A program made the position numbers and the translations under genes. Source: Vitrella brassicaformis CCMP3155 (lineage: Eukaryota > Protista > Chromerida). From it: 51,193 nucleotides of DNA. The notes beneath the pieces were generated by a model that searched no databases, was not told where the DNA came from, and was given only the letters and a program-made list of their open reading frames with translations. Shown piece after piece: positions 1,711-38,658 of this stretch. Each line of letters starts with the position of its first letter. Position 1 is the stretch's first letter. The stretch covers positions 1 to 51,193 of the forward strand of contig CDMY01000566.1 of the NCBI GenBank assembly GCA_001179505.1. Reading direction: 5' to 3'.

Positions 1711-3057
1711 TGTGTGTGTGTGTGACCACACACTCTGTCTGACAACACACGGCTGTCTGCGTGCCCGTGAATGTCGAGTGGGTGGGTCTTGTGTAACGGC
1801 GAGTGGGCGAGATTTTTCCATTCTTGGATGGCTGCGTGGATGGGCCAGTCAGCCGTGTGGAAGTGAGAGCCGGTGTGATCTGTTTGTATCGTCCATCGAG
1901 ATCGACCCTACGCTGCTCTCCCCTGTGTGTGTGGGCTGCTCGTGTTTGCCGCTGTCGCATCTGTGCCGTCGTGAATGGTGCTCGTATCGAGAGTAGATGT
2001 GGGAGCCTTTTCCGACTGCAGGGATTTGGCGACGACACACAGGCACAGGAGAGGGCAGTTAGTTGTACGACTGACACGCTCCTTGTTCCGTCGGCCCGCT
2101 CGGTGTGTGTGCGCCGGGGTGGGTATCTCTCTGTTGCTCAATGGTTGACACGTACGTGCGGACTCTCTGCTTTCAATGAGACATACGTAGGCTGCCGAGA
2201 GACAAGGGCGATACACTCACAGTGATGCGCATGGCATGGCAACACGGGCGGTCGCCAGCCACGGACGACTGACTGTCGTGTCATGAAGAATAATACTATT
2301 GCTCGGTGAGATGGGTGGTGGCTCCGTGAGCGTGTCTGTCTGTACAGGGTTTGGCGACCACGAGCCCACACGCAGGTCCGACACCCAACACGTCACGCAC
2401 ATCAGCACACGCACACACAGATAATGTGCGTCAAAGGGATGGTCGGGTTCTAAGTACCGGATGGCCTCTCACGAAAATATCTCTCGCTCCAAACAGCAGT
2501 CTTTCGCTCAAACAGCAGTCTTTCGCTGAGGCATCCCCCGTTACGTTTCGCTACTGCCGGCCTGCCTCCTCGCCCTCGACGTGCCGCTTGCGGCCTTTTC
2601 GGCATTTATGGTGGGCACACACATGAATCCGTCCATGCGCCCAGCGAGTCGACGAGAAACAGCGAGTGAGTGAAAGGCTGAAACCTCATGTCTGACCAGC
2701 CGCTCAGCAGACTGACATGACCGAAGGATCAAACGGAAAGGTTCAGACAGATATAAAATGAAGGCAGCGATGGATTGCCGTCAGGTCTCAAGCAAATGTC
2801 TCTCTCGCTCAAACACCCGTCTGTCGCTCAGGCATCCCACGCTATGGTGCCGGCCTGCCTCGCCCCCTTTACTGTCCGCGGCCTTTTTTGCGTTCCGTCC
2901 TCCTCTTGAGGTCGTAGGCGGCCTGTGGCGCCCTCACCTCCCCCAGCGCCGCGTCTGCCCGCAGCTGGGCTATCGGCAGCTGCATGTTGGGCACGCTGCG
3001 GCGAGGGAGGGCCGCCTCAAAGGCGCCACGGTTGTAGGCAGCGATGTCGAGGGGGAG

Positions 3058-3571
3058 TCAGTCCCAGCAGGCCTCCCCCAGCTCCTCCTCGACAAACGAC
3101 TCGTCCACCGAGACCAGCGGGCGGATGTGCTGCAGCAATACACACACACACACACACACGCAGACACACAGACAGTCAATACACCACACACGAGTGATGA
3201 TTGCCACTTGTGTGTGTGGTGTGTGCAGTGATCGCTCACGTGCCTCGTCATTACGGTCGGATATGTTGGCCAGCACCGGGCCGTGCATGGCGGCCAGCGT
3301 GATATCATAGATCAGCTGCGTGGCGTAGCTAGGCATGGGCTTGCCCTCGGCCAGCCGCCTGCTACTCACCACCTCAACCACCTGACAGACAAATGGAGAG
3401 ACACACAAGAGGTGGGCAAATGTCGTGTGCAGGGTGAGTGGCATGTTGTGTGAGTGATGTTCACCTCCTGTATGTTATTGTGCGTTTCGAGCAGCGTGAA
3501 GGCCTCGGGGAGACTGCTGACCACCCGCGGGAAGTGGCTGCCTCCGTTGAGTAGGAAGCCAGCCACCATCC
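3058..3571 (-). other. 3' fragment (last three exons) of the unnamed multi-exon gene family (copy 3), inverted and cut off by the gap; homology extends over 2604-3571
   Basis: Reverse complement of about 7863-8779. Encodes MVAGFLLNGGSHFPRVVSSLPEAFTLLETHNNIQE / VVEVVSSRRLAEGKPMPSYATQLIYDITLAAMHGPVLANISDRNDE / HIRPLVSVDESFVEEELGEACWD*. Confidence 0.8.
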
Positions 3572-3871
3572 NNNNNNNNNNNNNNNNNNNNNNNNNNNNN
3601 NNNNNNNNNNNNNNNNNNNNNNNNNNNNNNNNNNNNNNNNNNNNNNNNNNNNNNNNNNNNNNNNNNNNNNNNNNNNNNNNNNNNNNNNNNNNNNNNNNNN
3701 NNNNNNNNNNNNNNNNNNNNNNNNNNNNNNNNNNNNNNNNNNNNNNNNNNNNNNNNNNNNNNNNNNNNNNNNNNNNNNNNNNNNNNNNNNNNNNNNNNNN
3801 NNNNNNNNNNNNNNNNNNNNNNNNNNNNNNNNNNNNNNNNNNNNNNNNNNNNNNNNNNNNNNNNNNNNNNN
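3572..3871. other. Scaffold gap (300 N, fixed-size placeholder)
   Basis: Run of 300 N. All five gaps in the window are the same length. Confidence 1.
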
Positions 3872-4757
3872 AGTCCAAGCCCACACCGGCACAGGCGGTC
3901 CAGCAGCAGGCCAACGGCCACCCCCTTCCCTCCTCCCCTCAGTCCAACAATGACAACGCCCTCGCCCCTGCACCCACCCACCCACCACCGCCCCCAGCAG
4001 CAGCAGCGGCAGCGGCGGCATCAGCCGAGCAGCCCGACCACATCGCCATGCCGCCCCCGCCCCTCCCTGACTTCGTCAAACCCAAGCCGGCCCCTGCAGG
4101 CATTAAGGAGGACCATGCGATGGGCAGCAACGGGAGCAGTGGGGACGACGAGTCGTCCTCTGACTCAGAGGAGGACAAGAGAGGGAGGCGGCCAGCCAAG
4201 CGCAGGGACAAGGCTGCCAAGGCCGGTGCTGCTGCTGGTGGTGGGCTGCTGAGCGGCGCCACGACGGACAAAAAGGAGCGGCGCCGGAAGAGAAAACAGA
4301 GGGGCGAGGGCGACGAGGGGGAGGGGCGCAAGGGCGACATGATGGCGTTGCAGAAGACCAGTTTGTACGGCCACAACCTGGGCACCGAGGGGCTGGACGA
4401 GGGGGAGGTGCAGCGGCAGATGAAGAGAATGAGACAGGAGCAACAAGACGTTGACGTCGACGAGAGGTGAGCCAGGGAGTGACCACACACCCACCCGACA
4501 CACCACACATGGACATTCACGTTCCTTTCCTGGCCGTGTGCAGGCGTCGGTCGTATCACAGCATCGCCGGCACCAACGCGCTGGGCACCGTCACTGCAGA
4601 GGAGATGGAGGTCAGCGAAGACCACACGCATGTGGACTGCCTGACATCGACGCGTTGCGCCATGCTCCCTCTCTGTGTTTGTGTCTGTTGGTTCCCTCAG
4701 GCGTACAGTCGCAGCCGCGTGCACGCCGACGATCCCATGAAGGCCTTCCTCAAGTGA
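3872..4757 (+). CDS. SLU7: Second, partial copy of the SLU7 3' end (paralogue or uncollapsed allele), starting at the gap
   Basis: The large exon is essentially identical to the one ending at 1421 (one synonymous change seen, CGT/CGG). The last two introns and the 3' flank carry substitutions and indels. Ends ...DDPMKAFLK* at 4757. Confidence 0.8.
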
Positions 4758-5422
4758 CGTGTGTGACCACACACTCTGTCTGCCTGCCCCTTAATGTCGA
4801 GTGGGTGGGTCTTGTGTAACAACAGTGGGCGAGATTTTTCCATTCATGGGTAGAGGGGTTGGTCCGCCAGTCAGCCGTGTGGAAGTGAGAGCCGGGTGTG
4901 ACCTGTTTGTGTCGTCCATCTGTGCTGTCGTCCCCTGTGTGTGTGGGCTGCTCGTGTGTGTCGCTGCCGCATCTGTGCCGTCGTGAATGGTGCTCGTATC
5001 GATTCTAGATGCGGGAGCTTTTTTCGACGGCGTCAGTGTGGCAACGACACGCACAGGAGGGGCTCGTTGGCTTGGTATGTGGGTGGGTGGGAAGTATTCA
5101 TGGTGTTCCCGTGCGTGCACTCAGTTCCATTGCCCGCGAATGGATGTCCATGCGCCTTCCTTTCAATCCATGCTGGCTGGCTGCCGGGCAAGGGTCTGCA
5201 GCGCTGCGCAGACAGCAAAGACAGCAATTTCGACAGCACACCAAAGACGGCACCAAAGACAAAAAGCCGGGGAAATCTCGGCGAGAATCCGAGACGCGAC
5301 AGGCCGAGACTGATTTACGAATTTGTCATTTCGAAAGTTCCCGGTGGCGGGCGTTCGGCCTGTCCGCCTTTCTTCGGCCACAGATCCTCCGGTTCTTTTC
5401 CTTTTTCCCCGGTTGTTGGCCT

Positions 5423-18853: not shown

Positions 18854-19421
18854 ATAGGGAGGGGAGGGACGGGGGTCGATTGGGCAAACACTTTGAGAAG
18901 GATATGTGGGCTGGTTGGACATGGATGAACGACGAATGTTGACTGAATACATACAATGCATGTACGAGGGCGATTGATTCAGAGAGAGGTGTGACTCACT
19001 CGACACACATAAAGGCCACCATTCGTTCCAAGTGACACGCATATTTCCTTCAGCAGCAGCGCAGCAACATCACACGAAGATTCTCTGAGGAGAGGACATG
19101 TTTGGCTCACTCGCGCCGAGCCCACGCCAGTCATGGGAACAGGATCTGCCGAGGAGGGCACCTGGGGATGGGTCGCACAAGGCAACGTGACATCAGATGA
19201 CTCAGACAGCCTGCTGATGAGTCAAAAGTCAGCAGGCTGTCAAGTCAACATGGACACAATGGGGATCGAACCCATGGCCTTCTCGATGCGAACGAGATGT
19301 GATACCACTACACCATACGCCCAGTTACCAACCTATGGTAGTGCTCTTATCACTGACTACGTCTGCTTCCCGCTCTTCAGTCATCTCGCACCAGCTGCTC
19401 CTTCCAGAAACGCAGCCATTC

Positions 19422-21008: not shown

Positions 21009-21308
21009 NNNNNNNNNNNNNNNNNNNNNNNNNNNNNNNNNNNNNNNNNNNNNNNNNNNNNNNNNNNNNNNNNNNNNNNNNNNNNNNNNNNNNNNNNNNN
21101 NNNNNNNNNNNNNNNNNNNNNNNNNNNNNNNNNNNNNNNNNNNNNNNNNNNNNNNNNNNNNNNNNNNNNNNNNNNNNNNNNNNNNNNNNNNNNNNNNNNN
21201 NNNNNNNNNNNNNNNNNNNNNNNNNNNNNNNNNNNNNNNNNNNNNNNNNNNNNNNNNNNNNNNNNNNNNNNNNNNNNNNNNNNNNNNNNNNNNNNNNNNN
21301 NNNNNNNN
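21009..21308. other. Scaffold gap (300 N)
   Basis: Run of 300 N. Confidence 1.
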
Positions 21309-22197: not shown

Positions 22198-22497
22198 NNN
22201 NNNNNNNNNNNNNNNNNNNNNNNNNNNNNNNNNNNNNNNNNNNNNNNNNNNNNNNNNNNNNNNNNNNNNNNNNNNNNNNNNNNNNNNNNNNNNNNNNNNN
22301 NNNNNNNNNNNNNNNNNNNNNNNNNNNNNNNNNNNNNNNNNNNNNNNNNNNNNNNNNNNNNNNNNNNNNNNNNNNNNNNNNNNNNNNNNNNNNNNNNNNN
22401 NNNNNNNNNNNNNNNNNNNNNNNNNNNNNNNNNNNNNNNNNNNNNNNNNNNNNNNNNNNNNNNNNNNNNNNNNNNNNNNNNNNNNNNNNNNNNNNNN
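22198..22497. other. Scaffold gap (300 N), preceded by a poly-C run
   Basis: Run of 300 N. Confidence 1.
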
Positions 22498-26508: not shown

Positions 26509-28120
26509 ATGCGTGGCTTGACGCTCCTCCTTCTGTCGCTGGCGCTGGCCGTCAACAGCTGCCAAGCCACCTGGTGGTGGTGGGGTTGGTGGTCTTCGGG
26601 AAGCGAGCGGGAGGAGGAGAGGTCCTCTTATCGTCAGGAGGCGACACAAGTCTCAGACCGCTCTGCCTCCGTGACCGCTGGCGACGACGACGCCCCAGTC
26701 GCGGCCCAAGTACATGTGGCTGATGAGACCAAGGCAGGGGCAGCTACAGCCGCCACAGCCTCGGCAGAGTCTGAAGGCCCAGCAGTGACTGAGAGTGAGA
26801 AGCCCGTCACCAGAGGTGAACCGAGGCACGTGATGGGGGACCATCGCATCGATACCTTCCAACCAACTGTGTCTGTCTGTCTGTGTGTGTGGGCGCAGCG
26901 GAGGCAGAGACACCGGAGTACAAACCCATGCCCAAGACCACAAGTAAGAATGGATGGATGGATGGACACAAGTACCGGCAGACCTCAGCCACACAGCAAT
27001 CGTGTGTGTGTGTGGTTGTGTGTGGTTGGTGCAGAGAAGCCAAAGACGACGACAACGACAACAGCAGGGGCCCCCACAACCACCGAGGAGCCCACCACGA
27101 CAGGTGGGGAGGAACGATGATGACCTGCTGACACAGTCACGTGCATCTCTCGACGCCTCCGTCTTGACTGGTGTGTGGTGCAGCAAAGCCCGTTGACACG
27201 ACGACTCCTGGGCCCACAACCACGAAGAAGCCAAAAGACAAGAAGCCCGCCCTGACGCCGGCAACGGGCGATGTGTGTGAAGGTCAGCCGGGACCAAGCC
27301 CACGCGCAGAGCTGTTTTTGTTCATCCCTTTGTCGAGTGCAGGTGTGAGTCCATCGCTGGCTGGCTTCCAGCTCGTCGTACTGGAGGACCAGAAGCCCGT
27401 GCACCCTCGCTTCGATGACATCGGCACTAGCGCCCCCGACCTCATTCACCCTGGCACCGTCGACTTCGTCGTCCCAGATGACGTCGATCTGCACTTCAGC
27501 TTTGCTGCTGTGCCAGAGGTGTGTGTGACGGCGGTGGAGTTCCAGCTGTTCGATTACGAAGGTTCGCGGCGGCACAGCACACGTGGCAAATGGGAAATGG
27601 GAAATGGATCGGTATGAGTGCGTGTCCTGTCTTCAGGTGTGCACATTGACTGGGACAACGAAAGGCACCCAAAGGGCTTCGACTTCTTCTCCCCCTTCGT
27701 GGCGTTCGGCAATGCGGTGTATCCGGCGACGGACAGGCCAGACATCTTCGGTGAGGCGGCTCGCGCCATCTGGCCGACAGGCGGGACTTTCACCCTCGAA
27801 GCGACCCCATACAACGGCGGCATCAAAGGCGGCCACATCAAGCTCACGTGTATGTCTGCAGTGAGTGGGGGGACACAGAGAGTGTCCTCGTTCATTTCTC
27901 TGCCTGTCTCTCTCTCTGACCAGTTCTGGTGCCATCTGCTTTCGACCAGCATCACACGTACTTCAGGGGCCGATCATCTTACCACACCAGCAGCCACACG
28001 CATCAGACGGGGAGCAGCGGCAGCGAGAGCGACGCCGACGGCGAAAGCACGGAGCACCACCACCACGTGCACTACCATCACCACCACTACTACAGCAATG
28101 GCGGCTCGGACGGCGCCTGA
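26509..28120 (+). CDS. Secreted mucin-like protein: signal peptide, Trp cluster, Thr-rich stalk, globular beta domain, His-rich tail; about 7 exons
   Basis: MRGLTLLLLSLALAVNSCQA-TWWWWGWWSSG...KPKTTTTTTAGAPTTTEEPTTT...EFQLFDYEGVHIDWDNERHPKGFDFFSPFVAFGNA...WPTGGTFTLEATPYNGGIKGGHIKLTFLVP...EHHHHVHYHHHHYYSNGGSDGA*. Confidence 0.75.
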
Positions 28121-29250
28121 TACGTCTGTCTATAGGCAATTGTTGAAGTGGGATGGATTTGTACCTACCGTGGGATGGATTTGTCTGTGTGTGTATGTGT
28201 CTTGTCTCTTGATGTTCATTTCTCTCTTCCTATGGCCGGCCATCATCTCTCCCACCCTCTTTCTCGCTGACCTGACTCTATGGCGTTTTCTTCTTCGTCG
28301 CTCGTTCCACTGAGTGTGATCCACTCTGCCTTTTTTCTTTTCGTTCGCGTGTCAGTGTGTGTGTGTCTGTGTGTTGTCATTGCAAGATTATTGGTCGCAG
28401 GTGCCAGTTTTTCTGGCATGCATAATTCACTCACTGCCGCTCTCTCATTGATGCTGGCTCCACCCATCCCTCTCTCTGCGGTTGAGATAGGGCGGCGCGG
28501 AAAATGATGAGCGTCATCGAGGCCGTAGAAGGGAGAAATGGGGGAGGCAGAGAGCGCATGCAGTGGTGGGTGGGTGGGTGAGTGAGCGCATCCGCCAATG
28601 AGTGGGTGCCAGAGGCTGGCGGTGCGTGCGCGTGTGCGTGTGGTGACATACCTGTCTGCTGGAGCGTAGGTCGCTTTCTGTCTGTGTCTCATGTCCGTGC
28701 GTCTGTTTTTTATTACATTGATTGATGCACACTGCGACGTGTAATGATCCGATCCACGGTAATACTATTATGTAGGTACGTAGGTAGGGACAAAAGTGAA
28801 AGGACGAAAGAGCCAGCTGTAACTAGCTAGGTCCATCCATCCATCGTACACACATGACATGCACTCGTCAATCAACATGACATGACGTCTGGCTGGCTGG
28901 CTGGCAAAAATCCTCCCTGCTGCCCCCCCTCATCCATCCATCCATCGACAGACACCCAACGACCCACCGAGCCACACACAGGCGGACACACACACCACAC
29001 ACCACACCATGGGCAGGGTCGGGTCTGTCTACGTGTCTATCTACCTACCTATCGGCAGCAACAACTCCCTGACTGACGCGCTATGTGCACCCTTGTATGC
29101 CCATCCACACACACAGAGGGGGTCTGTCTGGCTGCCCTTGGGGCCGGCTGTCCGTCTGTATCTCTGTCTGTACACGGTTGCACCATCCATCCATCCATCC
29201 CTACTAGATGACTACAGTGCCAATCAGGCGATCGATGATCAGGCCGTCAC

Positions 29251-30384
29251 TCACTCAGCCCCCCCCGCCCCCGCCTGTTCCATCATGAGCCGCCTGGCCC
29301 CTCTGGTGACGCTCTCCAGGGCAGCGGGTTTCTCTGCCGTGAGGACCCACCAGAAGAGTGCCGCCACAAACGCCACCTGGATGACAAAGTACATCTGGTT
29401 GATGGCCAGAAACAGCCGGTCTTCCCTGCTGGTTCGCTCCACCGCCTCGATGCCCCGCCGGCGGTAGAGATCTAGCCATTCCTCTCTGTCGACCTTGTCG
29501 GCGATGTATGCCGACCGCAGGATGTCCTCCAGCTGCGACTCCTCGGCCTCCTTCCGCGCAAACACGTCGTCATTGTCCTTCGGGAAGGGGTAAAACGGGC
29601 TGTTAGAGATGCGGAAGCCGCTCTGGCCGGGCTCGGGCGTCCTGAAGGCGGGGTCCTGCTCGGCCGCCCTGTCCTCCTCGTCGGCCCGGAACTCCTCCTC
29701 GAGCGTGACAAGCTCCTCAAGGTCAGGGAGGCTCCTGATGTCATACCCCGTCGTGTTCAAAGCCGCCAGCAGAGCATAGAGATCCGGGGGGACCGGGGGA
29801 TCGTACAGGCCGGTGGGTGTGGGAGGGGCGGTGGTGCGGTCCTCCACAGCAGCCCCCCTCTCCTCAGCTGCAGGGGGGGATAGCACGGTGATGGCTGCTT
29901 GTCCATCATCAGTTGTCGGGGGTAGGTCGTATGACACAGGCGGTGACGAGACGTCCCCCATCGTCGCGTCGCGATGATACGATGACGCCGTCCGCAGCGG
30001 AGCCACGGGGAAGGGGGGACCGTCGCCGCCGTACGATGGTGCCTCGGCCTCCGAGTCTCCGCCTGATGGGCCATCTGATGAGCGAGAGCCTCCTCCCCTC
30101 TGACCACTCGGACTCTCTGTCAGCACCGCCTCCTTTCCCACCGGCATCGCCCAGCTCCTCGCAGCGTGCCGCCCCCTCCTCAGTGTGAAGATCTCCATCG
30201 GGAACAAAAAGGCAGACGGGAAGGGCAGGGGTGAGAGGGCGGATATGGAGCGGGCGGCGTCATGCAGGCGCCGAGATCTTGGTCTAGGTGACTTGGCGAG
30301 GGACACGCGGACGGCGGGGAGGGCGGCGATGCGGTCGAGAAGAGCCAGAAAGATCAGCCCACAGATGAAGATGATGGAACTCAT
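29251..30384 (-). CDS. Single-exon 377-aa membrane protein with a probable bipartite (signal + transit) targeting leader and a C-terminal TM helix
   Basis: MSSIIFICGLIFLALLDRIAA (hydrophobic), then an Arg/Ser-rich, acid-poor stretch containing SAFL, an acidic helical core, and the TM segment LFLAINQMYFVIQVAFVAALFWWVLTA. Confidence 0.75.
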   Translation of the reverse strand: MSSIIFICGLIFLALLDRIAALPAVRVSLAKSPRPRSRRLHDAARSISALSPLPFPSAFLFPMEIFTLRRGRHAARSWAMPVGKEAVLTESPSGQRGGGSRSSDGPSGGDSEAEAPSYGGDGPPFPVAPLRTASSYHRDATMGDVSSPPVSYDLPPTTDDGQAAITVLSPPAAEERGAAVEDRTTAPPTPTGLYDPPVPPDLYALLAALNTTGYDIRSLPDLEELVTLEEEFRADEEDRAAEQDPAFRTPEPGQSGFRISNSPFYPFPKDNDDVFARKEAEESQLEDILRSAYIADKVDREEWLDLYRRRGIEAVERTSREDRLFLAINQMYFVIQVAFVAALFWWVLTAEKPAALESVTRGARRLMMEQAGAGGAE

Positions 30385-30714
30385 GAGCGAGGGCACTTAT
30401 CACTCTTCGTTCAACCAGATAGGCACAAACCACAACCGACAGAAGAGAAGACTGCTGCTCCCGACAGAAGAGAAGAGCTCGCCATCTGCGAGCTTAGAGA
30501 GCCTTCTTCCCTCCCCTCCTTCTCTCCCCGTGTGTGAGGCGCCGCAGTGAGGCTGCAGCGTGCTCTCGTTGGCTCAGCAGCCGAAAAACCGAAAGATCCG
30601 CTTGTCATCTTCATCCATCTCGCAGCTGCCGCCAGCGCGAGGCTTCGTCTGCGGCATGGCGGCAAGTGTGTAGCAGCCCCGTGGCACCCTCCGAGCAGCC
30701 AGATCTGCCCAATC

Positions 30715-33700
30715 ATGACGCGCCACTCATGGCTGCTTTACCATCTCCTCATCGGCCTCTCACTCGCCCCAATTGCGCTGCCACAGCCGTCTTCCGGCCC
30801 TCTGCGCGTTGGGCTCATCTGTCCGCTGAGCGGCTCCCTGAGCGAGGAGGGCCAGGACTTCGATGACGGCTTTCGCTACTGGTACGACACTGTGAGTGAG
30901 GCGGGCGGTGTGCGTGTGGGCGGTGCAGAGGAACTGACGCCCGTGGAGCTGGTGGAGCTTGACAGCGAATCGAACGGCACAAAGGCCGTCAGCAATGCAC
31001 GAGCCATGGTGGACCGACAGGTGGGTGACGGGGGGCGGATCGATCGATGTGCACAGCAGCAAATATAGGGCTGTGTCTGTGTGTCTGTCTGTCTTTGTGT
31101 GTGTGTAAAGGTTGACGTGGTGGTTCAGTGCGCCGCGCTGGATGTCGCCGGTGTGGCGGAGGTCTTGGAGGCTAGCTCCATTGTAAGCCAGCCAGCCAAG
31201 ACAGACACACAGTATCCATTATCCATTCCTCACCGCCTCCCCCCCNNNNNNNNNNNNNNNNNNNNNNNNNNNNNNNNNNNNNNNNNNNNNNNNNNNNNNN
31301 NNNNNNNNNNNNNNNNNNNNNNNNNNNNNNNNNNNNNNNNNNNNNNNNNNNNNNNNNNNNNNNNNNNNNNNNNNNNNNNNNNNNNNNNNNNNNNNNNNNN
31401 NNNNNNNNNNNNNNNNNNNNNNNNNNNNNNNNNNNNNNNNNNNNNNNNNNNNNNNNNNNNNNNNNNNNNNNNNNNNNNNNNNNNNNNNNNNNNNNNNNNN
31501 NNNNNNNNNNNNNNNNNNNNNNNNNNNNNNNNNNNNNNNNNNNNNCCCCCCCCCCCCTCCCCTCACTCACACACATGAATCAATCAGGTGAATCTGCACT
31601 GCTCGGGTCCGTTCTTCCCCACCGACCTTCAGTACAGCTTCGGCATACAGCTGCCCGCCCAAGACTACTATGCAGGTCACACACACACAACGCACACAGA
31701 TCTGGAGAGAGAGAGAGAGAGAGATTGTCTGTGACCGTCATTATCAATATCTCGATCAGGTCTGCTGAGAGACGCCCATCTGCAGCGGATCTCAAAGATA
31801 GCGCTGGTCGTCGACACCACGGACCCGACAGCAGGTAGGTACTCCACCACACCACACACAATCATAAGCCATGACACAGCCCGACGAGTGTCTGTCCCTC
31901 CCTGTCCCCTTCTCTCCCCAACACACACAGAGGCCATATGTGACGGCGCGAGGGACCACGCGTCCTCCTTCAACTTGAACATCTCATCAGAGCTCTCACT
32001 AGACGGCGCGACAACCACAGACAACAAGACCGTGTCGCAAATCGCCGAGTTCCTCCGCAACGCCGCTGACAACGACGAGGTGCAGGCGGTGTTCGCCTGT
32101 GTCTCACCCGAGGGCGGCGAGGCGTTCACCGAGGCCGTCATCGAAGCTAAACAGGACTTTCAAATAGTGGCGGTGGTGGGTCAGGGGAGGGCGGGGCACA
32201 GCAGCCAGCCAGACAGACAGAGAGCCTCAACACGCACAGGATGGTGTCTGTGTGTGTGGTCGTACGTCTGTCCAGTCGTCCTTGCCAATGACGGCAGAGT
32301 TCTTGGAGCGGTTTGGCCGCGACCTGGCTTATCTGCTGACGCCGGCACAGTGGCACCCCACACTAGTATTCAACAGCGACCCCCCATCCTTATTCGGTAT
32401 GTGCACATACATAACCCACATGCACTCTGACCCTTTCCCTCCCTCCCTCCCTCCCTCCCTCCCTCCGTCCCTCTCTGTCTGTCTGTCTGTCTGTCTGTGT
32501 CGCCATGCAGGGTCGTCTGAAGAGTTCTCCGAAGGCTTCGCGGCCAAACATGGCCGTCAGCCCAACGAAAACGTCGCGTCGTGTGCCGCAGCCGGGCTGG
32601 CGCTGCAACTGGCACTCGAGTCGATGGGGCCCGACGAGTGGACTGACGACAGGGAGACCAACAGCGGGGCACTTAGAGAGGCACTCGGTGAGTGAGTGAC
32701 AATGGAAACAAGGAGCGACCCAGTAAGTAGGTGGGCATGTCCGCCTGGCCTGGCCTGCAGGGTCATTGGAGAAATTTGAGGAGGCAGACAACACATTCTT
32801 CGGGCGTCTTGATCTCTCGGGGCAGCAGAACACGGGCCGCGAGCCCGCAGTACTGCAGGTAGGGACATCAATTACATTATGCTGAATGCCATTTAGCCAT
32901 TCATTGTGTTGCGCATTCATTGGTTTGGATGTTTGGATGTGTGTGTGGCCTGCCTGCCTGCCGCTCGCTGTATTCTGTGGTGCAGTGGTTGGAAGAGTAT
33001 GAGGGCTTTGGGGCGGTGCTGCCGTTATGGGTACGGCCGTACGTGGCCGGCACGACTTGCCTCAGAGATACTGGCTGCATCTCTCTCTCTCGCTCTCTCT
33101 GTCTGTGTGTGTGTGTGATATTAATTGCCTACTTCGTGTCTGTGTCACCCACCAGCAAGCTCGGGTCAAGTCTGGCGTGCAGCCGGCGCCCACATGGCAA
33201 TTCCGGTAGGCAAACACACACACACACACACCCCTGTGTGTCTGCTAGTTCTTGGACGGTCATTGGCTCGTTTGTGTGTTGGTCCGTGTGTGTCTTCGTT
33301 ACTGCAGTGCTGGCTGTCCGTCCGGCACGCGGCAGCTGTCGGGTCGCTGCGAGCCATGCCCTGAAGGACAGACCTCCAGGGGACCCAATGCTACCGAGGT
33401 CAGTCAGTCGTTGGTCGAATTCACACATGCAGCCACACACATCCTTCTGGCTGTCTGTCTGTCTGTCTGTCTGGTGATGCGTGGCGTGCAGTGTTCCGCG
33501 GCGGCATTGGGCGGCGGCGACTCCTCGACGACCATCATCATTGTGGCAGTGGTGGTGGTGGTGGTGGCGGTGCTGCTCTCTCTGCTGCTGCTCATCATTT
33601 TGTGGAAATGCGGCCGCCTGCCGTGCAAACCCAAACACACATGGGGGAGCGGTCAGGGCGCCACACCGCCCCACGCTCTCCACCCGGAGGACTCGATGGC

Positions 33701-34797
33701 CACCAATGGCAAGGACAAGGTGGTTGACGAGAAGGAGAGGGTCAAGCGCGGGCTGGCGCTGCTCAAGAGTCGCATGAATGGGGGCAAAGGGATGGAGAAC
33801 GGCATGCTGCACGGGCAGCACATGGGCAGCTGGCAGCCGTCGACCGCCGAGCCCACCCCGAGGAAGGAGGGGACGACTGAGGGAGAGAGTGGGGACATAG
33901 AGAGCGGCAACGGCAAGGGGCTGCTGGGCGGGGAGACCAGCACCGAGAGCAGCAGCGGCATGGCGCAGAGGAAACAGTCCTTCCCTGTGGACTTCACCGA
34001 GGTCAGTCAGCTCAGGTCGCTGTCGCTGTCAGAGCCACAAATTCTGACCATTCGTGTGTGTGTGTGTGTGTGATGGCGTGTGTCAGATTTTGCCGACTGA
34101 TTTGGTGTGTGGGTGGAAGGAGGAGGAGACCATCGGCTCAGGCGCCACGTGCTCAGTCTTCAGAGGCACTTGGCACGGCACAAAGGTGGGACAGACAGCA
34201 TCCCCTGCCCTCTGTCTGTCTGTCTGTCTGTCTGTTCCTATGTGGGGGTCGTGCCGTCACGGTGTGTGTGTGTGTGTGGATGGTGATGGTGATGTGCAGG
34301 TAGCCATCAAGAAGTTCCCCACCCAGCTGATCGAGGGGGGCAACCTTCGCAAGGTGTTCGTGTCGGAGGTGAGCGCCCTCGAGGCCCTCAGGCATCCCAA
34401 CATCATTACCTACTTCGGTCAGCGCACTGCACTCACACACACACCCACCGCAGCACATCCCTCTCTCCCTCTCTCCCTCTCTCTCTCTCTCTGTACGTGT
34501 GTGTGTGTGTGTGTGTTACCAGGATGCCACCCCCGTGCCCCTTATCTGATAGTGATGCAGTACGCCAACGGCGGGTCTCTGTACCACCTGCTGCACAAGC
34601 AGAAGAAGGATGAGGACCTCTCGTGGACCGAGAAGATGCGCATCCTCGTCGGCATCGCGGGGGCGCTGCAGTACCTCCACAAGGAGGGCCCTGGTCAGTC
34701 AGTCAGTCTGTCAGTCAGTCAGCAAAGGATACACACACACGCTCCATGGGCTGCAGCAAACCGCACACCATTCCATGGCGCGCGCGCGCGTGTGCGT

Positions 34798-34833
<36 letters not shown>

Positions 34834-37625
34834 TGTGTGTGGACAGGTACCAAGAAGGGTACGGTTCACGGCGATCTGAAGAGCGCCAATGTGTTGCTGA
34901 ATTACGAGGACGGCCAGCGCGGCGTCAAGCTGAGCGACTTTGGCTTCTCGCGCGTCAAGGCCCAGCAGACCCAACAGGTCCTCTCGCTCGTCGGATGGAC
35001 CGTCAGATGTGAGCAAACAGCGGAATCGATGAGGGCAAGGGCGAGGGCGAGAGTGCGTGTGTGTATCTTGGTTCAGGGGCGCCTCCTGAGATGATGGAGC
35101 GGCTCAAGAGAAGGTGCGGTGGGGTGGACATCTGGGAGGGAGCGGCATTGCTTGTGTCGCTCTTGTGGATGTGTGTGTGTGTGTCGGTGTGTCAGGGAGA
35201 AGGGCCGCTGGGCGACAATACAGACCCTTAAGCGGGCTGACGTGTACTCATTCGGTTAGGGAAAAACACACACATACAGAGACCGCACAGACACACTCTT
35301 CGTTGTGTTTGGCTGCGTGTGTCTGTGCAGGTGTGTTGATGTACGAGGTGGCTGCTCGGAGGGTACCCTACCCAGACCTCGAGTAGGCGAGCCACATGAC
35401 ACACACACACACATACACACACAGAGGCAGAATGGTCCGTCCGTCCCATTCTCTCTCATTGTGCAGCGAGACCAAGATCGCCCCCTTTGTGCTGATGGGC
35501 GGCCGCCCCACCACTCCCACATACCCCCCGGTGCAGGGAGCCATGCCCGTCAGTGAAGCACAGACACCTCAGACACCTCAGACACCTTCAGACACCGCAC
35601 TCACTTATGCCCTTTGTGTGTCTGTCGGTGACATCACATCACGTGTGCGCATCTGTCCGTACGTCAGCGTGTGGCCGGTCAGTTTGGTGACGTCAAGAAC
35701 CGTCCCTCCTTCGCGTGGCAGCTGCCCCCTGGCTGCCCCAAGGCCCTCGAGGCCATCATGCAGGAGTCCTGGGCGGACGACCCTGAAACCAGACCCACCT
35801 TCGACCAGATCACACCCAGACTGCAGGTACAGCTGTCTGTGTGTGGTGTGGCGTGGTGTGGTGTGGCGTAGGGGCGGCATGGATGGATGGATGTGTGTGT
35901 GTGTTTAGGCGTTATATGGGTCTGTGTCTGAGGCTGAGAGCCGCCCCGGGGGGCTGGAGGAACTCAACGCCAGGGAGGCGCAGCTCAGAACAAACCCGCC
36001 GCAGTCCACAGGAGTACGCAACAACACAGGCAGAGAGGACCTGACGGACACGCAGTAGGTACCGCTTGTCTGTTCCTTGTCTGCTCGCTCAGATGAATGT
36101 CCGTGTGCCGACCATCACCACCAAGATGATGCGCGAAGTCCTCTCCCAAGCGCCGTACCCACAGGGGCCTGACTCAATGGTCCGCCACACACAGCACTGC
36201 ACAGCACAGCACACACACACACACCGATAGCCATGCCGACCTCCATGTGTGTGCAGCCGGCGTCCCGGATGCGCATCACTCCCGCCCCGCCCGTGCCGCC
36301 GACCATCGAGGAGGAGAACTCCGAGAACTACAGCGCCAGCAACTACAGCAGTATGAGGCGCGAGTGGACCGCTGCACACGAGGGAGCCAGTGGTGGTGGT
36401 GGTGGTGGGGCGTCACAGGCCAGCGAGCCTGGCGCCACGGGGTACCACACAGCGGTGCCCACTTATTCTTCTGAAGAGGGAGGGGCCGTCTCGCCTTCGG
36501 CGGTGAGTGAGTGAGGAATTCGTGTGTGTGTGTGTGAGGCGTGAACGAGTGAATGATGTGGTGTGTTGTGTTGTGTGGGGTGGTGTGTGGGGGCGCAGGA
36601 CGGCGGCCCGAAGCCCTCCCCGACTCCCATCGCACGGCCGTCATCCGACCACTCTGTCGCCATGAAGCAGCCAAGCAAAGAGGTAGGTACCCACGGGCAC
36701 AACAGACAGACAGACAGACGTGGACTTCTCTCGCCCCTCTCCTCCATCTCCCCTCCCAATCCTTCATCGGCCAGCGTGCCCAGTCTGCGGACAGCGGGGC
36801 GTCGCCGGTGTCGCAAGGGCAGGCGGAGGCTCTCCGCAAGGCGTCGGGCGACCTGCCTGAGCGCCGAGCCTCTGGTGACACGGAAATGACGGAGCCACGG
36901 GGGCTCTCACAGTTCGCCGTGCTGTCTAACATACCGGTACGCCATCTCTATCACACACAAGTGCATCGATTGCGTCTGTCTGCAATTTCCTCTGCCTGTC
37001 TCTCTCCTTCTGTGTGGTCAGCAAAGCCGCCCAGGGAGCGTCATGACGGATGGGGTAAGAAGCTGCCTGACCCGCCCTTAACAGCTCGGGCGCTTGGATG
37101 CGCATCCGTCCGGGCAGTAATTACAAACCTCTTTTTCTCTCTCTCTCTGTCTGTTTGTTGCTCCCATGTGTGCAGAGCATCCCAGCGTCTGGCCGCAGCC
37201 CGACGAGTCAGGATGTGGCCTCCATATGGCAGGAGGCGGCCGTGGCCTCCCAGCGCCACACACAGGAGCTCGTCACTTCCGTCGGCGACCTCCCCAAGAA
37301 GGGCTACCTCAAGCTGCCCACCGATCGCCTGGTCCCCGCCACCAGGACCGAGCCGCCCACCGAGCCAGACATGCACCAGCGGCTCCAGCAGCTGCATGGC
37401 GCGGGGGTCGACAGCAGTATGGCCAGCAGCATCAACGCCTCCTTCGCCATCAACCTCACGGCGGTGAGTGGAGCATGCTCATGCAGACAGAGAGAGAGGC
37501 ATGTGTGTGCATTTGTGCATGTGGGTGTGTGGTGTGTGGTGTGTGGATTGCAGTCCAATTTCAATCCCGACGCCAACACGAACGGCAGCGCCAATGCCCC
37601 CGGCCCCTTCGGCCGGCCGTCCTGA
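30715..37625 (+). CDS. Receptor-like TKL protein kinase: signal peptide, type-1 periplasmic-binding-protein (LivJ/Venus flytrap-like) ectodomain, Cys-rich GCC2/GCC3-like module, TM, kinase, long tail; more than 20 exons, spans a gap
   Basis: Ectodomain LRVGLICPLSGSLSEEGQDFDDGFRYW...AGGVRVGG...VELVELDSES...AVSNARAMVDRQVDVVV. Cys module CPSGTRQLSGRCEPCPEGQTSRGPNATEC. TM IIIVAVVVVVVAVLLSLLLLIILW. Kinase motifs IGSGATCSVFRG, VAIK, HPNII, HGDLKSANVLL, KLSDFG, WAPPE, ADVYSFG, W..DP..RPTF. Confidence 0.9.
31246..31545. other. Scaffold gap (300 N) inside an intron of the kinase gene, flanked by poly-C
   Basis: Run of 300 N. Confidence 1.
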
Positions 37626-38358
37626 ATGACTTTGTCCTTATTACAAAGATGATGCATCGATGGATGGATGGATGGATGGACGAGTGGCGGTGGTCTCTCT
37701 CTCTCTAAGGGTGAAAGCTGTTTTTTTTTGCCTGAGGCGATGGAGGCATGGATGGTATGGATGGATGGATGGATGGATGTTGAAGAGAGAGGGAAGGAGA
37801 GTCGAGAGTGCTCGACCTGTCTGCCCGTCAGCACACCTATGCCTGTCTGTACGCCTGTATGTGTGTGAGAGAGGGAGGGAGGGAGGGAGGGTGGGAAAGG
37901 GGGAGGGAGGCACGGGCCCATGCCTGCCTGCGCCATGGGTGTATTTCGAGTCATTTTTAGCTTGCCTGCCTGCCTGCATGCTTCCTTCCTGCCTAGCCAC
38001 TTGACTTCTGACTGACTGACTGACTGACTGTCTTTTACAGCGGTAATGTGATGTGATCATGTGACTCGTTGCCTGGCGGCCAGGCAGGGGGCCTTTTTTG
38101 GCAGGCAAGTCTGAGTGCACTTGGGATGAATGGGGAGAGACGAGTTCTGAGTTCGTTCATCGGCAGAAGGCAGAGAGAAGAGATGAGAGCGAGCGATTAC
38201 TTACTTGGCGGTGGGGTGGCTTTGTCGCTGCTGAGCTGACTGTGTTGGTGTGGGTGTGTGGTGTGCCCTTTCTCATGCAGATGTGTGTGCAGTGAGAGAG
38301 GCGGCAACTGGGTGAATGCCGGCTGGCTCGTGTGGGGGGTGGGGAGGGAGGGAGGGAG

Positions 38359-38658
38359 NNNNNNNNNNNNNNNNNNNNNNNNNNNNNNNNNNNNNNNNNN
38401 NNNNNNNNNNNNNNNNNNNNNNNNNNNNNNNNNNNNNNNNNNNNNNNNNNNNNNNNNNNNNNNNNNNNNNNNNNNNNNNNNNNNNNNNNNNNNNNNNNNN
38501 NNNNNNNNNNNNNNNNNNNNNNNNNNNNNNNNNNNNNNNNNNNNNNNNNNNNNNNNNNNNNNNNNNNNNNNNNNNNNNNNNNNNNNNNNNNNNNNNNNNN
38601 NNNNNNNNNNNNNNNNNNNNNNNNNNNNNNNNNNNNNNNNNNNNNNNNNNNNNNNNNN
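38359..38658. other. Scaffold gap (300 N) flanked by (GGGA)n and (CCCT)n
   Basis: Run of 300 N. Confidence 1.

Follow-up and report, generated by a model that had tools for sequence, protein, structure and literature searches.

In the Venus kinase receptors (VKRs) of invertebrates, and in the VKR-like UTK12/RTKS of choanoflagellates, a Venus-flytrap domain, a transmembrane (TM) segment and a kinase are combined in one receptor (PMC3703292, PMC2680970), and the ligands described for VKRs are L-arginine and, for SmVKR2, calcium (PMC3703292, PMC2680970). Here we describe a candidate receptor of the same general design in the alveolate Vitrella brassicaformis CCMP3155. We analyzed the forward strand of a 51,193-nucleotide (nt) stretch (contig CDMY01000566.1, assembly GCA_001179505.1), hereafter called the window, and found that positions 30715-37625 probably hold a single nuclear gene for a type I receptor kinase whose flytrap would be gated by a small molecule. 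A sequence-only reading made earlier from the same DNA had proposed such a receptor and knew of no characterised example of the design; in this respect it had overlooked the VKRs (PMC3703292, PMC2680970).

As in the VKRs, the Vitrella gene would place a flytrap, a single TM helix and an active kinase, in this order, in one polypeptide. However, the flytrap of the VKRs is of the ANF_receptor type (PF01094), whereas that of Vitrella is Peripla_BP_6, of the LivJ class; Pfam found no PF01094 match in any exon of the Vitrella receptor, and its first exon matched PF13458 only. The kinases differ as well, that of the VKRs being an insulin-receptor-like tyrosine kinase and that of Vitrella a TKL-like, non-RD kinase with a DLKSAN loop, nearest to CTR1 and IRAK1. 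Because both the flytrap type and the kinase type differ, the Vitrella receptor stands outside the VKR family and has only the architecture in common with it. Given the different flytrap, the different kinase and a host that is an alveolate and not a member of the Holozoa, an independent fusion is most likely, and the receptor is best read as an independent or convergent alveolate version of a known design.

Other systems resemble parts of this receptor. The bacterial LivJ/LivK solute-binding proteins (SBPs) belong to the same family, Peripla_BP_6, and the best match of the first exon in the PDB was 3h5l, a putative branched-chain amino-acid ABC-transporter SBP (E 2e-4). These proteins are soluble or lipid-anchored and hand their ligand to a transporter, whereas the Vitrella domain is split by introns, ready for glycosylation, equipped with extra conserved cysteines and joined to both a TM helix and a kinase. 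In the receptor guanylyl cyclases, or natriuretic peptide receptors, an ectodomain of the type-1 periplasmic-binding-protein (PBP1) kind is combined with a single TM helix, cytosolic catalysis and a kinase-homology domain; there the output is a cyclase and the kinase homologue is a pseudokinase, whereas in Vitrella the kinase, with all of its catalytic residues, would be the output. Trypanosomatid receptor adenylate cyclases also consist of a PBP1-type ectodomain, a single TM helix and a cytosolic cyclase. G-protein-coupled receptors (GPCRs) of class C (mGluR, CaSR and the taste receptors) have a flytrap followed by a cysteine-rich stalk, and the Vitrella stalk gave a weak, sub-threshold match to NCD3G, but their body has seven TM helices and their stalk nine cysteines, compared with the one helix plus kinase and the four cysteines of Vitrella.

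Of the eukaryotic relatives of the ectodomain that we found, the closest come from haptophytes: P0051 of Prymnesium polylepis (EukProt), and P0116 and P0117, which are related to it at 56-57%. A signal peptide, Peripla_BP_6, a cysteine pair, a TM helix and two motifs, HCSG and PxPTW, are common to these proteins and the Vitrella receptor, in an order colinear with exons E1-E12, but they are only about 25-30% identical to it, and their cytosolic 350-400 residues are not a kinase and match no Pfam family. SHQWL and W-I-D-Y-L-S-I-P-Q motifs occur in these cytosolic regions (P0116 residues 500-911, P0117 residues 490-853); these motifs resemble the HET domain. The haptophyte proteins may represent another uncharacterised class of flytrap receptor. 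On the cytosolic side, the best solved relatives of the Vitrella kinase are IRAK and the RLK/Pelle-class non-RD TKL receptor kinases of innate immunity in plants and animals, together with the Raf-like CTR1. A non-RD loop is typical of pattern-recognition receptor kinases, as Dardick and Ronald reportedly described in 2006. The immune TKL receptor kinases take leucine-rich repeat (LRR), LysM or death-domain inputs, and none of them is known to use a flytrap.

Results

We placed exons from the three forward-frame translations and the splice sites. The resulting gene model, on the + strand, has 29 exons (E1-E12, K1-K9 and T1-T8; Table 1) and a coding sequence of 3876 nt, or 1291 codons plus a TGA. 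Each of the 28 introns is GT-AG and the phases agree throughout; apart from intron 2, which holds an assembly gap, the introns are 68-153 nt long. The encoded order is signal peptide, LivJ-class PBP1 domain, four-cysteine stalk, one TM helix, juxtamembrane region, kinase and tail.

The model could be compared with that of a relative. When exon 1 was searched with phmmer against 1.84 billion representative proteins, one match fell below 1e-10, P0001 (93% identity, 128 amino acids), a genomic open reading frame (ORF) annotated with PF13458 on L001, a 5277-nt contig of the ENA metagenome assembly ERZ893784. A word search with the TM exon led to L002, a second contig of this assembly (4601 nt) that aligns to window positions 32468-37139, that is, to E7-T6; among proteins, a genomic ORF of the relative was the sole match of that search. 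All 27 exons covered by the two contigs were 93-100% identical to the window, and the only indels in exons were three of 3 nt each. Most introns, by comparison, carried indels that were not multiples of three, with identities from 92% down to 57%, while donor GT and acceptor AG were kept throughout, with the exception of one donor that lies inside an alignment gap. The overlap between L001 and L002, within the low-complexity E6/E7 intron, was imperfect. L002 was assembled independently and by itself holds flytrap exons E7-E8, the stalk, the TM helix, the kinase and the tail. Because these parts lie together on L002, the locus appears to be neither two genes nor a chimera.

Next, we counted codon differences between the window and the relative. 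Synonymous and non-synonymous changes numbered 34 and 5 in the kinase, 16 and 3 in tail exons T1-T6, 12 and 9 in the TM/juxtamembrane exon, and 33 and 31 in the ectodomain, the contrast between ectodomain and kinase being significant (Fisher p = 2.4e-4). Kinase exons K1-K8 showed no amino-acid change, and T1-T6 were 95-99% identical to the relative, the 3 non-synonymous changes of the tail falling in 238 codons. Strong purifying selection thus acts on the kinase and the tail, and the ectodomain evolves at about six times their pace, which is the usual receptor pattern of a fast sensor on a constrained signaling half. The counts also indicate that both lineages hold a functional gene.

We then asked how far the ectodomain follows the PBP1 fold. 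E1 alone matched Peripla_BP_6 (PF13458) with 42.1 bits against a cut-off of 31.7 bits, over profile positions 1-68, and a language-model look-up returned only Peripla_BP_6 and leucine-binding clusters. The remaining ectodomain exons, which are short and divergent, fell below Pfam detection. A bacterial PBP profile was built from 16 sequences, with which the exons were compared singly by hhalign and hidden Markov model (HMM). The matches followed the profile in increasing order: E1 at 6-111, E3 at 149-168, E4 at 179-193, E5 at 197-235, E6 at 273-305, E7 at 308-357 and E8 at 363-372. Only E1 and E7 were significant as single exons, E7 with 94.2% probability and E 1e-7 in hhalign and E 1.7e-5 with the HMM. 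The same order was found by hhalign along haptophyte P0116, itself a Peripla_BP_6 match over profile positions 3-338: ten exons (E1-E8, E10 and E12) were strictly ordered from residue 29 to residue 507 (Table 1), and the chance of this order alone is about 3e-7. Results from tblastn and Smith-Waterman with the haptophyte homologues concurred, with the HCSG and PxPTW motifs and cysteines in common. Because the exon matches are colinear on both the bacterial profile and P0116, the ectodomain appears to be a complete two-lobed LivJ-class type-1 binding domain, in agreement with the class that the sequence-only reading had assigned to it. A tree of exon 1 only (111 sequences, 98 columns) was unresolved and spoke neither for nor against a bacterial donor or an origin in common with the haptophyte group.

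Behind the end of the PBP1 domain, two mini-exons (E9 and E10) lead to the stalk. The stalk, about 30 residues with four cysteines in a CP.G...C..CP.G pattern, had been described from the letters as a CxxC-rich linker like GCC2/GCC3; this description did not survive, as the stalk holds a single CxxC and GCC2_GCC3 was absent from its Pfam matches, which were all sub-threshold: TNFR_ELAPOR1_6th with 14.9 bits (cut-off 33.2, E 0.026) and NCD3G with 12.2 bits (cut-off 38.9, E 0.17). One TM helix, of 26 hydrophobic residues at 33528-33605, was found, as had been proposed; it is followed by a stretch rich in lysine and arginine and by a juxtamembrane region of 130 residues in which Pfam found no domain. 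The signal peptide, four N-glycosylation sequons in the ectodomain, the one helix and its basic stop-transfer stretch indicate a type I membrane topology for the predicted receptor.

The kinase was recognized by Pfam as well. The piece at 34048-35091 scored 70.7 bits with PK_Tyr_Ser-Thr (PF07714; cut-off 23.1) and 67.3 bits with Pkinase (PF00069; cut-off 31.7), the end of the profile was matched by the C-terminal piece in the last kinase exon (26.6 bits), and the best PDB matches were Arabidopsis CTR1 (8e-11) and human IRAK1 (2.8e-9). These two matches, and the higher score of PK_Tyr_Ser-Thr than of Pkinase, suggest a TKL-like kinase. The VAIK, DLKSAN and DFG motifs that the sequence-only reading had listed for a TKL kinase were all located intact (Table 1), and the translation also contains the alpha-C glutamate, DVYSFG, the glutamate of APE and the subdomain XI arginine. 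Two peculiarities noted earlier were likewise found in the translation: the arginine of HRD is replaced by glycine (HGD), which makes the kinase non-RD, and the P+1 loop reads GWTVR-W-APPE, the codon of the middle tryptophan being split over the K4/K5 intron. DLKxxN is the catalytic loop of Ser/Thr kinases, and the VRW..PE stretch resembles the tyrosine-kinase consensus. Because a Ser/Thr-type loop is combined here with a tyrosine-kinase-like P+1 motif, dual specificity is conceivable. Between subdomains X and XI there is an insert of about 22 residues, to which K8 (35467-35530) and the first part of K9 (35668-35735) each contribute a '..G.RP..P' motif; the relative has kept the two exons. The insert arose by a small duplication within the gene or else is particular to this lineage.

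The tail of several hundred residues that had been noticed behind the kinase amounts to about 360 residues in eight exons (35909-37625), phase 0 on both sides, and runs to the TGA at 37623-37625. No Pfam domain was found in it. That a tail without domains is conserved like the kinase suggests that it carries linear docking motifs.

We also examined the 300-N assembly gap in intron 2, whose closing the sequence-only reading had asked for. The intron has its donor GTAAGC at 31183, directly after E2, and its acceptor CAG ends at 31587, with both boundaries in phase 0. L001 crosses this region: its bases 2233-4341 correspond to window 29148-31245 and its bases 4335-5198 to window 31546-32399 (about 91% identity), so that the two flanks meet inside a C-rich tract with nothing extra between them. 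In P0116, the residues aligned to E2 (104-127) and E3 (130-165) follow each other with none lost at the gap. Since L001 crosses without additional sequence and the P0116 residues are continuous, the gap is an assembly break at a homopolymer; its true missing length is about zero, no exon is hidden in it, and the intron around it measures about 100 nt. The window contains five 300-N gaps (3572-3871, 21009-21308, 22198-22497, 31246-31545 and 38359-38658); low-complexity sequence (GGREGG and PPSLPPSL in translation) borders the one at 38359-38658 too, and the remaining gaps may likewise be breaks at homopolymers or in low-complexity sequence.

Table 1. Features of the predicted receptor gene in the window. 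Identities are to the contigs of the relative; P0116 gives the haptophyte residues matched.
Feature	Position	Strand	Support
Start codon and signal peptide	30715-30783	+	hydrophobic N-terminus, binding domain directly after
E1, signal peptide and N-terminal PBP1 lobe	30715-31020	+	P0116 29-89; 93.5% identity to L001, one 3-nt indel
E2, PBP1	31111-31182	+	AG/GT, phase 0; P0116 104-127; 94.4% identity, 0 indels
Assembly gap, 300 N in intron 2, poly-C tract	31246-31545	.	L001 joins both flanks directly
E3, PBP1, HCSG motif	31588-31675	+	P0116 130-165; 96.6% identity
E4, PBP1	31760-31834	+	P0116 184-194; 94.7% identity
E5, second lobe of PBP1, with sequons NIS and NKT	31931-32175	+	P0116 200-269 (hhalign, weak alone); 94.3% identity, 0 indels
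E6, PBP1	32276-32396	+	tblastn with P0051; hhalign 79.5% probability at P0116 281-316
E7, PBP1 C-terminal part	32511-32687	+	hhalign/HMM with bacterial PBP profile; P0116 323-357; on L002
E8, PBP1 end	32761-32858	+	P0116 400-424
E9, 15 codons between PBP1 and stalk	32986-33030	+	AG/GT, phase 0; 93.3% identity, 0 indels; flanking introns with indels
E10, PxPTW motif	33156-33205	+	100% identity to L002; P0116 445-451
E11, short cysteine stalk, NAT sequon	33308-33398	+	translation; fourth stalk cysteine is the first residue of E12
E12, TM, basic stop-transfer and juxtamembrane	33492-34001	+	translation; P0116 475-507; 95.9% identity, one 3-nt indel
Kinase domain overall	34087-35826	+	9 exons
Kinase exons K1-K3	34087-34185, 34300-34417, 34523-34693	+	AG/GT, consistent phases
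VAIK	34300-34311	+	translation
Kinase exons K4-K6	34847-35008, 35077-35113, 35196-35254	+	AG/GT, consistent phases
Catalytic loop HGDLKSAN, non-RD, Ser/Thr-type DLKxxN	34867-34890	+	K4: 0 amino-acid changes in relative
DFG	34936-34944	+	translation
Kinase exons K7-K9	35331-35382, 35467-35530, 35668-35826	+	AG/GT, consistent phases
Tail exons T1-T4	35909-36013, 36093-36179, 36257-36502, 36599-36682	+	all phase 0
Tail exons T5-T8	36775-36936, 37022-37054, 37176-37463, 37554-37625 (TGA)	+	all phase 0

The window has a GC content of about 58-62% and numerous short, TG/CA-rich introns, and its other long ORFs belong by Pfam to ordinary eukaryotic families (MYG1 exonuclease, Slu7, ankyrin). The stretch directly upstream of the receptor (30397-30714) reaches no more than 73% identity with L001, with 23 gap columns in the alignment, and for this reason looks non-coding. 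A divergent ORF of 381 codons on the - strand (29251-30396) has its start some 320 nt upstream of the receptor ATG; it has no Pfam match, is kept in L001 and has a hydrophobic C-terminal segment. The ORF and the receptor probably have one short bidirectional promoter region in common. Shortly after the stop codon, at 37640-37790, GGAT/GGATGG units are repeated in tandem runs, and the sole Rfam match in the window was a tRNA gene on the - strand at 19251-19322 (RF00005, 61.2 bits). The ERZ893784 contigs are about 87-91% identical in DNA to window 27041-37139, with the same gene order including the divergent ORF, which suggests that the environmental sample contained another organism or strain like Vitrella; they would be useful for comparative checks of gene models across this genome.

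Discussion

This gene is most naturally read as encoding a small-molecule receptor kinase. A cleavable signal peptide is predicted to send the flytrap and the short disulfide stalk to the outside, leaving the kinase and the tail in the cytosol. By analogy with the class C GPCRs, the natriuretic peptide receptors and the VKRs, a small extracellular molecule, likeliest an amino acid, or a small organic acid or amide related to one, would close the flytrap, and this closure would re-orient a receptor dimer through the stalk and the helix. Trans-phosphorylation between the kinase domains could follow and extend to the juxtamembrane region and the tail, both of which would then serve as docking sites for downstream partners. 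Because the kinase is non-RD, phosphorylation of its activation loop is probably not required. The ligand class, an amino acid or small polar organic molecule, would follow from family membership alone.

Several points weigh against this picture. The flytrap fold was pieced together exon by exon, and E4, E5 and E8 match PBP profiles weakly when taken singly. Urea, amides and aromatic acids are ligands of this family too. In the kinase, the third glycine of the glycine-rich loop is a cysteine. The splice junctions come from sequence logic and comparison. T7 and T8 lie beyond the comparison with L002, but their in-frame GC content at third codon positions, 0.89 and 0.83, is similar to the 0.78 of the validated exons. 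Finally, the searches of protein collections with exon 1, the TM exon and the kinase returned no annotated or transcript-derived full-length receptor protein; that with the kinase was a word search at a strict E <= 1e-10 with a length filter and an intron-interrupted query, and its lack of matches carries little information.

We considered three alternatives. It is unlikely, in our judgement, that the flytrap is not a ligand switch and serves instead for adhesion, as a scaffold or for scavenging on a constitutively active kinase, or that the kinase itself is mainly a scaffold. Non-RD kinases are often constitutively or weakly active, the ectodomain evolves comparatively fast and no binding-pocket residues could be assigned in it, as such a role would allow; yet the PBP1 domain is colinear over its full length and under purifying selection (dN/dS, the ratio of non-synonymous to synonymous rates, roughly 0.3), the catalytic residues are intact and identical in two lineages, and every class of flytrap receptor that has been studied uses the domain as a ligand switch. 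Location in an internal membrane (endoplasmic reticulum, vacuole or other endomembrane), where the receptor would sense a lumenal metabolite, we hold to be decidedly improbable. A signal peptide specifies only entry into the secretory pathway, but there is no room after it for a plastid transit peptide or sorting extension, and the sequons and conserved cysteine pairs fit a secretory or surface ectodomain, both of which are weak arguments.

That the locus holds two adjacent genes, a flytrap-TM protein ending soon after E12 and a separate cytosolic kinase, is very improbable: unspliced E12 does run into a stop 23 codons past the proposed donor (34071-34073), and the haptophyte homologues do carry the same ectodomain without a kinase, but E12 and K1 are just 85 nt apart, an intron-sized spacing like all others, with GT and AG conserved in the relative across a 2-nt indel, and the kinase frame has no ATG from the E12 donor to the middle of K3, by which point the glycine-rich loop and the lysine of VAIK have been passed. 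A stand-alone kinase gene is implausible because its product would lack both of these elements. The sequence-only reading had treated ectodomain and kinase as one gene, to be abandoned if transcripts were to show two, and the single contig L002, the splice sites and the missing ATG all argue that it was right. A pseudogene is ruled out by an intact gene in two lineages with synonymous-biased changes, an assembly chimera by the same order on the independently assembled L002, and bacterial contamination by the introns and the eukaryotic neighbors (MYG1, Slu7 and ankyrin).

With the small-molecule-gated receptor kinase as the preferred reading, we considered whether it is new. A literature search found no PBP or flytrap domain with a TKL kinase described in chromerids or other non-holozoan protists, and the chromerid genome paper makes no mention of such a receptor. 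When JGI metagenomes were scanned with K4, 80 kinase loci with 38-64% identity were found, none with a PBP-like flanking ORF, which is a weak negative since many of the contigs are short. We regard as evenly balanced the proposal that the receptor is an independent alveolate invention, in which a bacterial-type domain for amino acids or other solutes was set on a TKL kinase that is non-RD, may have dual specificity and is followed by a conserved docking tail; in haptophytes the flytrap is carried on another cytosolic domain.

Apicomplexans have few receptor kinases. If our reading is correct, a free-living relative of these parasites would possess a pathway in which one protein leads from a nutrient or chemical cue to phosphorylation, and the gene would bear on how nutrients or partners were sensed in the apicomplexan lineage before parasitism. 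It is an expressible candidate for ligand screens, kinase assays and a survey across alveolates, and its conserved, domain-less tail hints at downstream partners. Taken together, these results suggest that the flytrap-kinase design of animals and choanoflagellates may have arisen again from other parts, a LivJ-class head and a non-RD TKL kinase.

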